64,000 nt of DNA from Phaeosaccion multiseriatum (Eukaryota > Protista > Ochrophyta, other classes). The DNA lies in NCBI GenBank assembly GCA_965112735.1, contig OZ218952.1, positions 3,906,001-3,970,000 on the forward strand. The letters run 5' to 3'. Shown piece by piece: positions 27,601 to 31,816 of the stretch. The notes below the pieces were generated by a model. The model was not told the origin of the DNA. It ran no database searches and was given only the letters and a program-made list of their open reading frames with translations. The translations under genes were made by a program, and so were the position numbers. Each line of letters starts with the position of its first letter. Position 1 is the first letter of the stretch.

Positions 27601-28640
27601 CTATGCCTCGTTCTTGGAGCGCAGGATCTCCGAGTCTCCCTCGTCCGTGATGGACAGGACGGAGCAGCGGAAGTACTTTCCGCAGGCCGTGCCGAGGTCG
27701 ATGTTGGAGCCCGAGTAGTGGTGAACGGTGCACTTTGAGAGGAGGGCGTAGTACTCAATCTCGGACTTGCGCAGGGGAGGGCAGTTGTTGGAGATGAGCA
27801 CCTGGGAAGGGGGGAGAACAGAAGAGAGGGAGGAGGTTGAGGGAGGGGGGGGGGAGAGGATAAGAGAGGAGGTGAAAGGCTCGTTCCCTACACTGGGCAG
27901 CCAGCTTCGCTAAGGACGAACACACCATCTTGGCCTTGGAGTTCCTCATGGTCTTGAGGGTCTGCTTGTAGCCCAGAGAGGCCTTGCCGGAGCGCATGAC
28001 CAACTGCAGACGGGAGTTGATGTTCTCCGTCGCCTTCTTCGACTGGATTGTTGTTACAGGTAGGCGCACCAACATCAAGAGGGCGGGGAGTCCAGAGAGG
28101 GAGGGAGAGAGAGGGAGAAAGAGAGATGAATGGTACGGTACATGGGGGCGAAAGGCAGGAAGAGGGTCGAGCAAAGAGAGGGGCCACAGAGGTGATGCAA
28201 AGAAAACTCAGGCATGGCATGGCACCCACATACCAGGCAGGCACTTTGGAGTACGCTGCCGGGTTTTGCCCATCCGCCTGAGGCGCGTTCCCCTCTCCTC
28301 GCTCCCTCTACCACACATCCAGCGGGCGTTTATGCGCCCGAGGGAGGTGAGGTGAGCAAGTGAGAGGGGGGCAAGCGACACTGCAGGGTTCTCCTGGGAC
28401 CTTGAGGCTAACCCCTCCTCACACGGGGCCATCTACACTATCTTCCTCTGTCCAGCTGCCTGCTGCTGCCGTCATCAAACGCCCTCTCATCTTCTCCAGT
28501 AGGAAGTGATGGGGATGGTGGGCTGCCGCCTAATCCCATCTCTCAGTTTCAGCCGCCGCGGCGGCCTCTGGCCGCAGCTGCCGTAAGCTTCACATCTGTA
28601 CCATATCCGACACACTCACTGTCTTCTTTCCTGGCGCCAT
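27601..28640 (-). CDS. RPL30: 60S ribosomal protein L30 (eL30), 112 aa; exons 28640-28620, 28042-27926, 27801-27601
   Basis: [23 protein letters not shown]; [17 protein letters not shown]; [10 protein letters not shown]. Confidence 0.98.
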
Positions 28641-28664
28641 CTCTGGATGTAAGTCCTCCGGGCC
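28633..28664 (-). promoter_or_regulatory. Putative L30e-binding kink-turn overlapping the RPL30 AUG
   Basis: RNA GGCCCG-GA-GGA-cuuaca-UCC-AGA-GA-UGG(C)GCC: C-stem GGA/UCC, 3-nt AGA bulge, tandem G.A pairs and an NC stem. The layout is the same as the yeast RPL30 K-turn (ACCGGAG.../...CAGAGAUGG). Confidence 0.75.
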
Positions 28665-30464
28665 GCAAAGCTAAGAAGATAATTGACTGAAGCCACTCAT
28701 CAGGCTGGAGGCGCTGAAATTTCATAGGCCTACGGAGGCCTCCCTATTAGCCCAGGGGGGCCGTGCACACGGCGAGTGGTGAGCGCAGCGAGGCATTTCG
28801 AGTGTGTTAGTTCACTTGAGGGATCAAGGTAAGGTGTGGCTTTGGTGCACAAGTGAGGTGGTTGCTGTGGAGAGTACTTGCTGTGTGTGTGCTGTCAGGT
28901 TTTGATCTTGTACAGATAGGAATTAATGGAGGGGGGGAGGGGGTCCACCTCGATGGGATTGAGAGACAGGAGAAGCAGCGCTGTGACATGAGGAGTGAGA
29001 GACCAGGAAACCTGGCTTACTAAGGAGAGCTGGCTTTTTGCAGCAGCATTACAACGAATGCCAGAGGGTAGAGGCAGCAGCAGAGGAGGAGGAGACGGAG
29101 GAGGAGGAGGAGGAGGAGGAGGGATGAGGAGGAAGGATGGAGCACAATGGGCACTTGATCCCCCTGACTTGAAGAGTATGGCAATGCGTATCGGCAGTGT
29201 GCAAAGCAATGCTTGAACCACGGCAGCAGCAGGAGCCGCCGCAGGACCGCACGCAGCTGAGGGGGATGGATGAAGGAGGCGTCCGGCGAGTGGGTCCTTC
29301 TTCAGATTATAACACATCTGGCAAGTGGACGTCACGTGGCGCTGCAGTGTTGATGGAAGGAAGGCACGATGGTGGGCCTCTGGCCTGATCTTCCGTCATC
29401 AGCAAAGCTGTCTGGAGGATTACAAGAGGAGGAGGAGGCGGGGGGGGGGCAGGCCAAGGTATGCCATAGAGGGCGTCGTACACAGGGAGCAGGTATGCTT
29501 CCCGTCCCTCCGGTATACGTTCTTTCGACTTCCTGCGGTGCGAAAGAGGTGGGGGTGGAGGGGCTGGTGAAGGCACAGCGGCGTCGATCACGTGGATGAA
29601 TGGTGGTACCGGTGTTGGTCCCGTTCACAGGGCAATGTCACTACCACTGCTTCTGCTATTGCGGCTGCTATATCAGCAGTAGTGGTAGGAGGGGGAAGAA
29701 GGGGCGTGCTGGGGGGACTGCTGCCTGTGGCAAGGCATCTTGCTTCCCTTCAAGGCCTCCGAAAAGGAAAGAGCCGGGTGGGAGGTAGTGCAGCTCACCC
29801 TTCCAGGAGGTTTTTTATGCTGATTTCTCTCGTCTCAGGGACGCAGCAGGGAAAGGCCGTCCAAGGAGTCCTGAGACATTACCTCCCCCCCGTTCTGGCC
29901 TGCTGAACTGGTCTGTTCTGCTCCCGGGTACGGGTGCCGTTCAGTGGGTGGACGCGCTGATGGGGTTTTGGGGCCTTATCTTATGCCCGTACCCACACAC
30001 GTGTAGATGATGACGTGGTTGGTTGCTCTCCAAACTCCTTCTGCCTGTGGAAGTCGGGGGGCTTCGTGTATGGAAAGGCAGACGGTGTCGCCGTCTGCGA
30101 GCAGAGCAGCCAGCAGTGAAGGGGGGCGACATGATTTTGAGGTCGGACAGCTCCTCAGCCCTCCAGCACATCCAAATGATAGAGAAGGACTGCCCCTCAC
30201 TCGGCGGACAGGACACGAGGAGCGAGTCGGGTGCCGAGCAGTAACGGGACCTTTCTCTTTTTAGCCAAGCCCCGTGTCTTTGTTTGGTCCTGCGTTGTCT
30301 ACCTGCTTGGGTGTTAAATTTGATTCTCCCAATTATCATGAGCTCACTTCTCCTACACTCCACTCCCCCCCGCCTTCGCCTTGTGCATGCTGTTGCCTAT
30401 ACGCTCTCCCCACACCTCCTCTGCCTGGCCCTATGTGACTGTTTATGACCCACCCATCAACAGG

Positions 30465-31816
30465 ATGCCTGGCATGCATCAGTACCAGGTGGTGGGTCGC
30501 AAGGCCCCCACTGAGGCAGACACCAACCCCCCTGCGTACCGCATCAAGCTGTTCGCGGCCAACAAGGTGACGGCCACGTCCCGATTCTGGTACCTCATGC
30601 ACCAGATGAGGAAGATGAAGAAGACCACCGGAGAGATTCTTGACATCAACGAGGTGAGGGAGGCAGAGGAAGAGAGGCACGTTACCGCTTAATTGCTCGC
30701 TCACGGAAAGGAATGAGGGAAGGATTAGAGGAGGGGGAGAGATGATAGGCATGCATGTGTGGGCGCGGCCGTGTGAGGACCGGAGATGGGGCTGGATGGG
30801 TGGGTGGGTGGGTGGGTGGGTGGTCGGCGAAGAGGGAGAGGGGAGCGAGGTCACAAGGAATGCCCCCCCCCCGCGTCGCATCACCACCTTTGGTGCTATC
30901 GCTCCCTTCTTCTCCATCTCAACCCCCCACCCCCCCCCCAAATGTCTGGTGCCTGCTCCTCCGTCCTTCCCCCTCCCCCTCCCCTACGCAGATCACGGAG
31001 AAGAACTCGTCCATCGTGAACTTCTACGGCATCTGGCTGCGGTACGACTCCCGCTCCGGCACGCACAACATGTACCGCGAGTACAGGGACCTCACCCTGT
31101 GCGGCGCCGTCGACCAAATGTGTAAGTCATTCAAGTCGTTTGGTGTGTGTGTGTGTGTGTGATTTAGGAGTGAGAAGTGTGTCTGACTTCATGCGCTTCA
31201 TTCCCGGCGTCGAGTTCCTTACCATCCACACACACACACACACACACTCCACCCGCACTTACGCTGCCCCACAGACTCCGAGATGGCCGGGCGACACAGG
31301 TGCCGCCCCCGCTCCATCCAGATCATCCGCACTGGCATCCTGGAGGCCAAGGACGTCAAGAGGATCAACATGCTGCAGTTCAAGGTGAGTTGGACGAGGA
31401 GTGCTGCGAGGAGTGATGAACCTCACTGACACCACCACCAAGGGTTTTGTTGTCTTGAGAGGTATTTCTCTTTGTGCAGTAGGGGAAGGGTAATTTCTGC
31501 AGAGAGTCAGGTGGGATGATGGAGCCGTAGCATTGCCTACCAAGGACTTGTCACTCACGGGCAGGCCATGCCCCTCTTCGCTTGTGCTGCTTCGCTTCGC
31601 CCTCCCGCCTGTTCGCTCGTTTGCTTGCACCCTTCCTTCCTCACCCCCCTCCCCCCCCCCTCTCGCTCTCTTTTGTCTGTCCTCGCCTCTCAATGGCCTC
31701 GCACCCCACAGAACTCCAAGATCAGGTTCCCCCTTACCCACCGAATCCCCCGTGCCGCCCACAAGAAGCACCGCACCACCTACAAGGCCAACCGACCCAC
31801 CACCCACCTGGGTTAG
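30465..31816 (+). CDS. RPL18A: 60S ribosomal protein L18a (eL20), 177 aa; exons 30465-30653, 30992-31121, 31275-31384, 31712-31816
   Basis: [50 protein letters not shown] and YKANRP motifs. Confidence 0.98.

Follow-up and report, generated by a model that had tools for sequence, protein, structure and literature searches.

A conserved kink-turn motif over the RPL30 start codon of an ochrophyte alga, a candidate eL30 autoregulatory switch

The start codon of RPL30, the gene of ribosomal protein eL30, lies within a kink-turn (K-turn) motif in a 64,000-nucleotide stretch of the Phaeosaccion multiseriatum genome (the window; contig OZ218952.1, positions 3,906,001 to 3,970,000 of the forward strand). 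This observation, made in an initial annotation, was confirmed here. Established are the sequence motif, the register in which it meets the start codon and its selective conservation across four taxa that have diverged. The leader K-turn is likely an autoregulatory switch with which eL30 hides the AUG of its own message; for the steps of such a switch, we infer from the sequence that the leader is transcribed, that it folds as a K-turn, that eL30 binds it and that binding represses expression. A broader and more tentative reading, in which doubt slightly outweighs belief, is that the feedback switch arose independently in an ochrophyte branch (the Xanthophyceae and this alga) by mimicry of the K-turn in ribosomal RNA (rRNA) and converged on the yeast solution, sharing with it the strand order, the ACCGGAG heptamer, an A at L3, U.G at 3b.3n and the A of the AUG in a sheared pair.

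The K-turn motif at the RPL30 start

Read as the reverse complement, window positions 28633-28664 give GGCCCGGAGGACUUACAUCCAGAGAUGGCGCC, exactly the leader and coordinates first reported, and lie on the minus strand at the start of the eL30 gene. The whole conserved leader element, which comprises an outer helix, the K-turn, the hairpin of the canonical (C) helix, the start codon and the first codons, spans 28629-28668 (minus strand) in the covariance models R2 and R1 and in alignment A3. The non-bulged strand CC-G-GA-GGA (28654-28661, minus strand) provides C28661, C28660, G28659, G28658 and A28657 as positions 5n to 1n and G28656, G28655 and A28654 for the C helix, and all eight positions are the same in the relatives L087-89, L097 and Tribonema minus L156. 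The bulged strand UCC-AGA-GA-UGG (28637-28647, minus strand) provides U28647, C28646 and C28645 for the C helix, A28644, G28643 and A28642 as L1-L3, and G28641, A28640, U28639, G28638 and G28637 as 1b to 5b; it is invariant in the relatives save for L1, which is U in L087-89. The C helix (GGA/UCC, with -1b:-1n = C:G) has three base pairs (bp) and is closed by the hexaloop CUUACA (28648-28653, minus strand), in place of which the xanthophytes have an insert of 19-23 nucleotides (nt). The non-canonical (NC) helix consists of U.G, G-C and G-C and is extended by the outer helix, where GCG (28664-28666, minus strand) pairs with CGC (28634-28636), invariantly in all four taxa. G28663 and C28662 are bulged from the outer helix in the window, and the xanthophytes have AA at this place. 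The minimum free energy (MFE) fold of the window sequence reproduces the helices of the K-turn as first drawn, with an alternative outer register in which GGC (28664-28662) pairs with GCC (28635-28633).

A bulge of three nucleotides with tandem G.A/A.G pairs after it is the standard K-turn arrangement, and it is found in the window as well as in L087, L097 and L156. A Watson-Crick C helix and the NC helix are both present, with the helix 1 cells 100% paired. At the level of sequence, the predicted structure of the window leader conforms to every K-turn rule. With UCC-AGA-GA-UGG opposite CCG-GA-GGA, the canonical K-turn described earlier (GGA/UCC stem, AGA bulge and tandem G.A pairs) is borne out, as is the placement of the A of the AUG in a sheared pair, since A28640 is A2b. 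The start codon (28638-28640, minus strand) occupies positions 2b-4b inside the NC helix; its A is the sheared A2b, its U is 3b opposite G28659 and its G pairs with C28660. The gene model places the element at the 5' end of the eL30 gene with the AUG within the structure.

The eL30 gene runs on the minus strand in three exons and encodes a product of 112 amino acids (aa). Exon 1 (28640-28620) encodes MAPGKKT; ochrophyte relatives share both this short first exon and the phase of the intron. Intron 1 (28619-28043) begins with the 5' splice site GUGAGU (28614-28619), which is outside the K-turn element; its donor at 28619 is 21 nt past the A of the AUG, in agreement with the distance given initially. 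Exon 2 (28042-27926), intron 2 (27925-27802) and exon 3 with the stop codon (27801-27601) complete the gene model. The exon 3 acceptor is supported by spliced metatranscriptome contigs of a ~94%-identical relative, which end exactly there. The protein has a match to PF01248 and shares 80-87% identity with eL30 proteins of ochrophytes; it also matches the eL30 chains of solved ribosomes and of the complex between yeast L30e and mRNA (1T0K). For annotation, the element marks the true start and the tiny exon 1, which automatic calls missed on several contigs (90-aa calls, e.g. P0009).

Searches with covariance models and pattern descriptors showed that the motif exceeds chance. Model R2, built from three xanthophyte RPL30 leaders only and thus without the window, was run with filters off over 128 kb; its sole significant match in the window is the element at 28629-28668 on the minus strand (26.5 bits, E = 4.9e-5), and the next best match has E = 0.72. 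Model R1 matches the element with 47.3 bits and detects T. minus, which is absent from that model, at E = 1.6e-12. A strict in-register K-turn, with the A of the AUG as 2b and all stems Watson-Crick, occurs at one of the 1592 ATGs on both strands of the window, and this ATG is the RPL30 start. When G.U pairs and any 3n are permitted, in-register K-turns occur at 1% of the window ATGs. The descriptor CCGGAGGA-N(4-34)-UCCNGAGAUGG has one match in the window and none in 100 dinucleotide shuffles, and among 99 collected loci it matches only RPL30 starts. Rfam searches gave no match at the window leader with E up to 10 and no match at the element of the xanthophyte loci at the gathering threshold.

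Relatives that carry the element

The comparative set consisted of 80 metagenome eL30 loci and the genomic loci of ochrophyte eL30 proteins, named and unnamed. Tribonema minus and two other Tribonema-like taxa were found to have this element at their RPL30 start, in an identical AUG register, giving four distinct sequences with the window, three of them from one clade; by its eL30, the element-bearing group clusters with Tribonema (Xanthophyceae). The 5' block is gcgaACCGGAGGA in the JGI metagenome contigs L087, L088 and L089, in L097 (an assembly of a public sequencing run) and in the T. minus genome (L156), where it is followed by spacers of 20, 23 and 19 nt, respectively. The 3' block is UCCUGAGAUGGCGCCC in L087-89 and UCCAGAGAUGGCGCCC in both L097 and T. 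minus. In the window the blocks are gcggCCCGGAGGA and UCCAGAGAUGGCGCCA, separated by 6 nt. Thus the strands GCG..CCGGAGGA and UCC.GAGAUGGCGCC are nearly invariant across the four taxa, and the spacer between them takes lengths of 6, 19, 20 and 23 nt. The Tribonema RPL30 leader blocks read ACCGGAGGA and GCGAACCGG.

The conserved blocks start exactly at the base of the outer helix (GCG), and the sequence upstream as well as the introns are unalignable. The non-coding motif positions are identical at 17-18 of 20 (pairwise P 6e-5 to 1e-2), the coding sequences are 80-87% identical at the nucleotide level among the four taxa, and the fourfold-degenerate sites are 41-65% identical. Intron 2 of the window gene has no counterpart in the xanthophyte genes. 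The divergence of the coding sequences and of the fourfold sites, together with the differing intron content, indicates that these are separate organisms and not strains. The xanthophyte spacer forms an extra stem of 5-6 bp atop GGA/UCC, in which one compensatory change (G.U to U-A) is seen. The pattern supports purifying selection on the predicted element in at least four diverged taxa. The alignment of leaders with a search for covariation, proposed at the outset as a check, gave conservation in four taxa and no covariation beyond the one compensatory pair.

Two further observations concern individual members of the group. A competing fold was seen in the L097 prediction only, where UUUAGCGG (L097:251-258), the 5' arm of the spacer stem, may instead pair with the coding sequence CCGCUAAG just past the AUG (L097:286-293). 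In the transcriptome of Tribonema gayanum, isoforms have an MRFWM... N-terminus in place of MAPIKKA... (P0008 vs. P0199, eL30 of T. gayanum and T. minus). The MRFWM isoforms suggest that another 5' exon is used or that RPL30 transcripts are processed aberrantly; the MRFWM peptide was sought in the T. minus intron and is not encoded there.

Proposed control by eL30 and its alternatives

In the proposed mechanism, the RPL30 leader would fold, or be folded by eL30, into a small hairpin with a standard K-turn. Free eL30 in excess, a K-turn binder of the L7Ae family, would recognise the leader as a mimic of its own rRNA site, and its binding would stabilise an otherwise weak hairpin, the C helix of which has 3 bp in the window. 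Once clamped, the hairpin would keep the scanning 43S complex from the AUG and possibly also from the leader near the cap, and by this sequestration eL30 would repress its own translation, as on the mature yeast mRNA. In all four taxa the 5' splice site follows the AUG by 18-21 nt and the donor lies 14 nt beyond the last base of the outer helix (C28634 in the window). Because the donor is outside the helix, the element would persist in the mature mRNA, which makes translational control the main expected mode; an effect on the splicing of intron 1 is possible but would be secondary. The earlier statement that the K-turn survives splicing holds, as intron 1 begins 21 nt after the A and its donor is outside the helix. 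A pyrimidine run, UCUUCUU (28673-28679, minus strand), is a candidate region for a TCT- or terminal oligopyrimidine (TOP)-like transcription start, and a C/U-rich run is found 3-20 nt upstream of GCG in all four element-bearing leaders. A TCT-type start at UCUUCUU is plausible and would bring the K-turn near the cap. A longer helix that would reach the 5' splice site, in which UCUUCUU would pair with AAGAAGA in the window, was rejected as it is not conserved in the relatives.

Several features of the element point to eL30 as the ligand. The L30 K-turn has a protruding A, and L30 takes A or C at this position, where L7Ae and 15.5K favour U (PMC1874613). The 3b.3n pair of the yeast L30e-mRNA K-turn is U.G (PMC5061560), and 3n = G and -1b:-1n = C:G promote K-turn folding (PMC6298567). 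The window has these identities, with L3 = A28642, 3b.3n = U28639.G28659 and -1b:-1n = C:G. The yeast L30 site lies within the 5' untranslated region (UTR), and L30 controls both splicing and translation (PMC3706390; PMC6298567). The residue required for RNA binding by L30 is aromatic, F85 in yeast and Y89 in mammals (PMC3706390); matched by eye, its equivalent in the window protein appears to be the F of the GKYFR stretch.

Some results weigh against control of RPL30 by eL30 through this element. The MFE fold of the 32-mer has -7.7 kcal/mol, which is no better than shuffles (z = -0.3), and folding of a 141-mer gave z = +1.3; however, K-turn energetics are outside the nearest-neighbour model, so that the folding energy is uninformative. 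The C helix of the window has only the 3 bp closed by the hexaloop. The core pairs never vary, so that conservation comes with almost no covariation. The RNA contigs found span only exon 3 and the 3' UTR of the ~94%-identical relative and include no 5' end. The yeast 5' splice site directly follows the AUG and is inside the structure, whereas that of the alga is 14 nt outside, where the GUGAGU donor (28619-28614) has no conserved pairing. Finally, the element is missing at eight ochrophyte RPL30 loci outside the Tribonema-like group, all of which have a first exon encoding MAPGKK[ST] or a close variant. The PX-clade genomes of Chrysoparadoxa, Phaeothamnion, Discosporangium and Ascophyllum as well as L085 (an mRNA-like contig), L093, L095 and L096 keep exon 1 and the intron position and have unrelated sequence before the AUG. 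One of these, L085, carries the exon 3 protein most similar to that of the window (87% identity).

The alternative that survives best, though unlikely, is a real and selected hairpin or K-turn that either serves another ligand (SNU13/15.5K, NHP2 or eS12) or tunes start-codon use on a highly expressed mRNA without any protein. Conservation reveals constraint and not the ligand, and several proteins of the L7Ae family bind K-turns (PMC5061560); for the protein-independent version, Mg2+ is predicted to suffice for folding given 3n = G and -1b:-1n = C:G. However, the eL30 gene itself is the one place in the 64-kb window where the element was found, and among the 99 loci it was found only at RPL30 starts. 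The A at L3 is tied by published work to L30, in distinction from the U favoured by 15.5K and L7Ae (PMC1874613), and the AUG register agrees with the yeast L30 site as the literature describes it.

Binding by eL30 with a mainly nuclear output, namely inhibition of intron 1 splicing or retention or decay of the pre-mRNA as in yeast, with translational repression as a minor effect, is less likely still. The yeast L30 K-turn blocks the recruitment of U2 (PMC8047918; PMC11585973), exon 1 is very short in all four algal genes with the donor 18-21 nt past the AUG, and the MRFWM isoform of Tribonema gayanum possibly reflects aberrant processing. However, the algal donor is outside the helix by 14 nt with no conserved pairing to it, and MRFWM is not encoded by the T. 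minus intron. The element-free relatives share exon 1 and the intron position, so the short exon is independent of the element.

The conserved blocks could also be signals at the DNA level (core promoter, initiator or transcription-factor sites) or a start context, with an incidental K-turn; this explanation is very improbable. In its favour, conserved elements near the start are a feature of ribosomal protein promoters, and AUGGCGCC is partly dictated by the Met-Ala-Pro coding sequence. However, an RNA hairpin is favoured over a bipartite DNA site of fixed geometry because the distance between the blocks ranges from 6 to 23 nt, their sequences complement each other in the exact K-turn pattern and the spacer is itself a stem. 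Positions -1 to -10 are unrelated in ochrophyte relatives with the same Met-Ala-Pro start, so that they do not represent a general start (Kozak) context. Chance resemblance in a GA-rich leader, which might be argued from the unremarkable fold energy, the relaxed in-register K-turns at 1% of ATGs and the frequent minimal K-turn-like pairs in Lys-rich RPL30 5' regions, is extremely unlikely given the single strict K-turn among 1592 ATGs, the empty shuffles, the detection by a window-free model and the recurrence at the orthologous start of three other diverged taxa, in which 80% identity of the coding sequences and differing introns speak against near-identical strains.

Known eL30 sites, origin and further observations

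The autoregulatory K-turn of Saccharomyces cerevisiae RPL30 (formerly RPL32) has reportedly been solved with L30e (PDB 1T0K), in work said to be that of Mao (1999), Chao and Williamson (2004), and Vilardell and Warner. Like the algal element, it is located in the 5' leader of its own gene with the non-bulged strand 5' of the bulged strand, has U.G at 3b.3n and a protruding A at L3, and contains the AUG region within the structure; in yeast both translation and splicing are repressed. The strands of the yeast K-turn are ~40 nt apart, and its 3' strand is taken to read CAGAGAUGG followed by the donor GUCAGU, for which no match was found in the tools and literature searched. In comparison, the algal element is a compact C-helix hairpin with an insert of 6-23 nt, and its C helix is GGA/UCC instead of the GUG/CGC that this 3' strand would give in yeast. 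A published yeast RPL30 primer, CAGACCGGAGTGTTTAAGAACC (PMC8970588), shows that the yeast 5' region has ...CAGACCGGAGUGU..., including ACCGGAG. This heptamer is shared by the yeast 5' strand and the xanthophyte strand and reads CCCGGAG in the window. Of the almost identical yeast motif claimed initially, the primer thus supports the 5' strand.

Two other systems resemble the algal element in part. The fungal rpl30 motif (Li & Breaker 2017, PMC5640933), described from 47 examples in 26 fungal species (in every case filamentous ascomycetes among the species listed), is likewise a hairpin of the L30 5' UTR, conserved and with a purine-rich internal loop, and a proposed eL30 autoregulatory site. 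It differs in being far larger, with a long unstructured 5' part, other loop sequences and an AUG outside the G.A pairs, and its published alignment rows contain no core alignable with the algal element. Rfam gave no match at the algal element, where it is unchecked whether Rfam 15 contains the rpl30 motif family. In the archaeal L7Ae 5'-UTR switch (Daume 2017, PMC5539422; Huang, Ashraf & Lilley 2019, PMC6298567), a ribosomal protein of the L7Ae family binds a K-turn of low stability in its own leader and the initiation site is occluded, as proposed for the alga. However, the regulator there is L7Ae, with a GAU bulge (L3 = U) in its K-turn, and the Shine-Dalgarno site is what becomes occluded; the archaeal K-turns are predicted to need protein for folding, whereas 3n = G and -1b:-1n = C:G are found in the algal K-turn.

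Outside the Tribonema-like group and this alga, the element is absent not only from the eight ochrophyte loci, brown algae among them, but also from ~35 further distinct eukaryote leaders, diatom-like ones included, and homology to the yeast site is accordingly not indicated. Among the true starts of the 80 metagenome eL30 loci, an in-register K-turn was found only in L034 and L067, both weak and A/U-rich, a yield roughly as large as chance would give. As to the place of the alga among the ochrophytes, the eL30 tree came out as a polytomy and synteny gave no placement. The element is probably restricted to the Tribonema group and this alga and convergent with yeast. Convergence is the more economical reading because most of the sampled lineages in between are without the element, and an ancient element with many losses is less simple; it presumably stems from both elements mimicking the conserved rRNA site of eL30. 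The initial wording, conserved or convergent, thus stands for conservation in four ochrophyte taxa and is sharpened to convergence with yeast by the element-free lineages. The missing homology lowers the case that the algal site is homologous to the yeast site, not that it works like it, and a feedback loop of the yeast kind probably exists also far outside the fungi. As a separate observation on affinity, the CAP protein of the window has its best matches in brown algae (~50%), which points to an ochrophyte and no more than that.

K-turn autoregulation of RPL30 is a classic example of ribosomal-protein feedback in eukaryotes. The literature reached records it from budding yeast alone, besides a related candidate motif from further fungi. 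A conserved in-register element in stramenopile algae would extend it beyond the fungi for the first time and permit a direct test of whether such loops evolve through mimicry of the rRNA site. If the proposed switch is real, burial of the AUG in an eL30 K-turn would be a repeatedly reachable and strongly constrained design, and eL30 autoregulation would become testable outside fungi. The compact natural series, with spacers of 6-23 nt, A or U at L1 and the splice site outside, can separate translational from splicing control.

Other candidates were rejected in the course of the searches. K-turn hits in L070 are not leaders but two tandem box C/D-snoRNA-like units (AUGAUGA ... CUGA; L070:470-530 and L070:730-790) in an intron of a plant-like metagenome RPL30 gene. 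A scan of bacterial and archaeal genomes with a 22-nt descriptor gave 56 matches (L100-L155), which were judged irrelevant: ~40 of them (38-nt) are the antisense of one conserved protein-coding stretch, which we take to be that of a CstA-like transporter, and the rest have unrelated flanks. Such matches call for caution in pattern scans that use the K-turn motif; viral contigs scanned with the descriptor gave no match. Minimal K-turns are more frequent in eL30 leaders than in mononucleotide shuffles (27 vs. 8.6), an excess that was judged to be confounded by AAGAAG lysine codons and was not used. In the metagenome loci L006, L013 and L014 (JGI), possibly from a green alga, a recurrent UCGGAGCU in the leader could form a minimal K-turn with GGCCGUGAAGA at the coding start (codons 3-6). 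Sister loci with GUC for GUG have neither half. This motif might be another independent eL30 site, a weak case that is possibly compositional.

Within the window, intron 1 of RPL30 contains a near-perfect hairpin of ~80 nt (28290-28371) with -54.2 kcal/mol (z = -6.3 vs. shuffles), for which Rfam gives a weak mir-3138-like match on each strand (E = 0.009 and 0.27) and which could be an inverted-repeat element or a small-RNA precursor. An exon for an eL20/RPL18A-like peptide, recognised by eye at ~30474-30650 on the plus strand, is arranged head-to-head with RPL30 at a distance of ~1.8 kb, and the two genes may share a bidirectional promoter region. The intergenic region between them contains a (GGA)n/(GAG)n microsatellite at 29085-29125.

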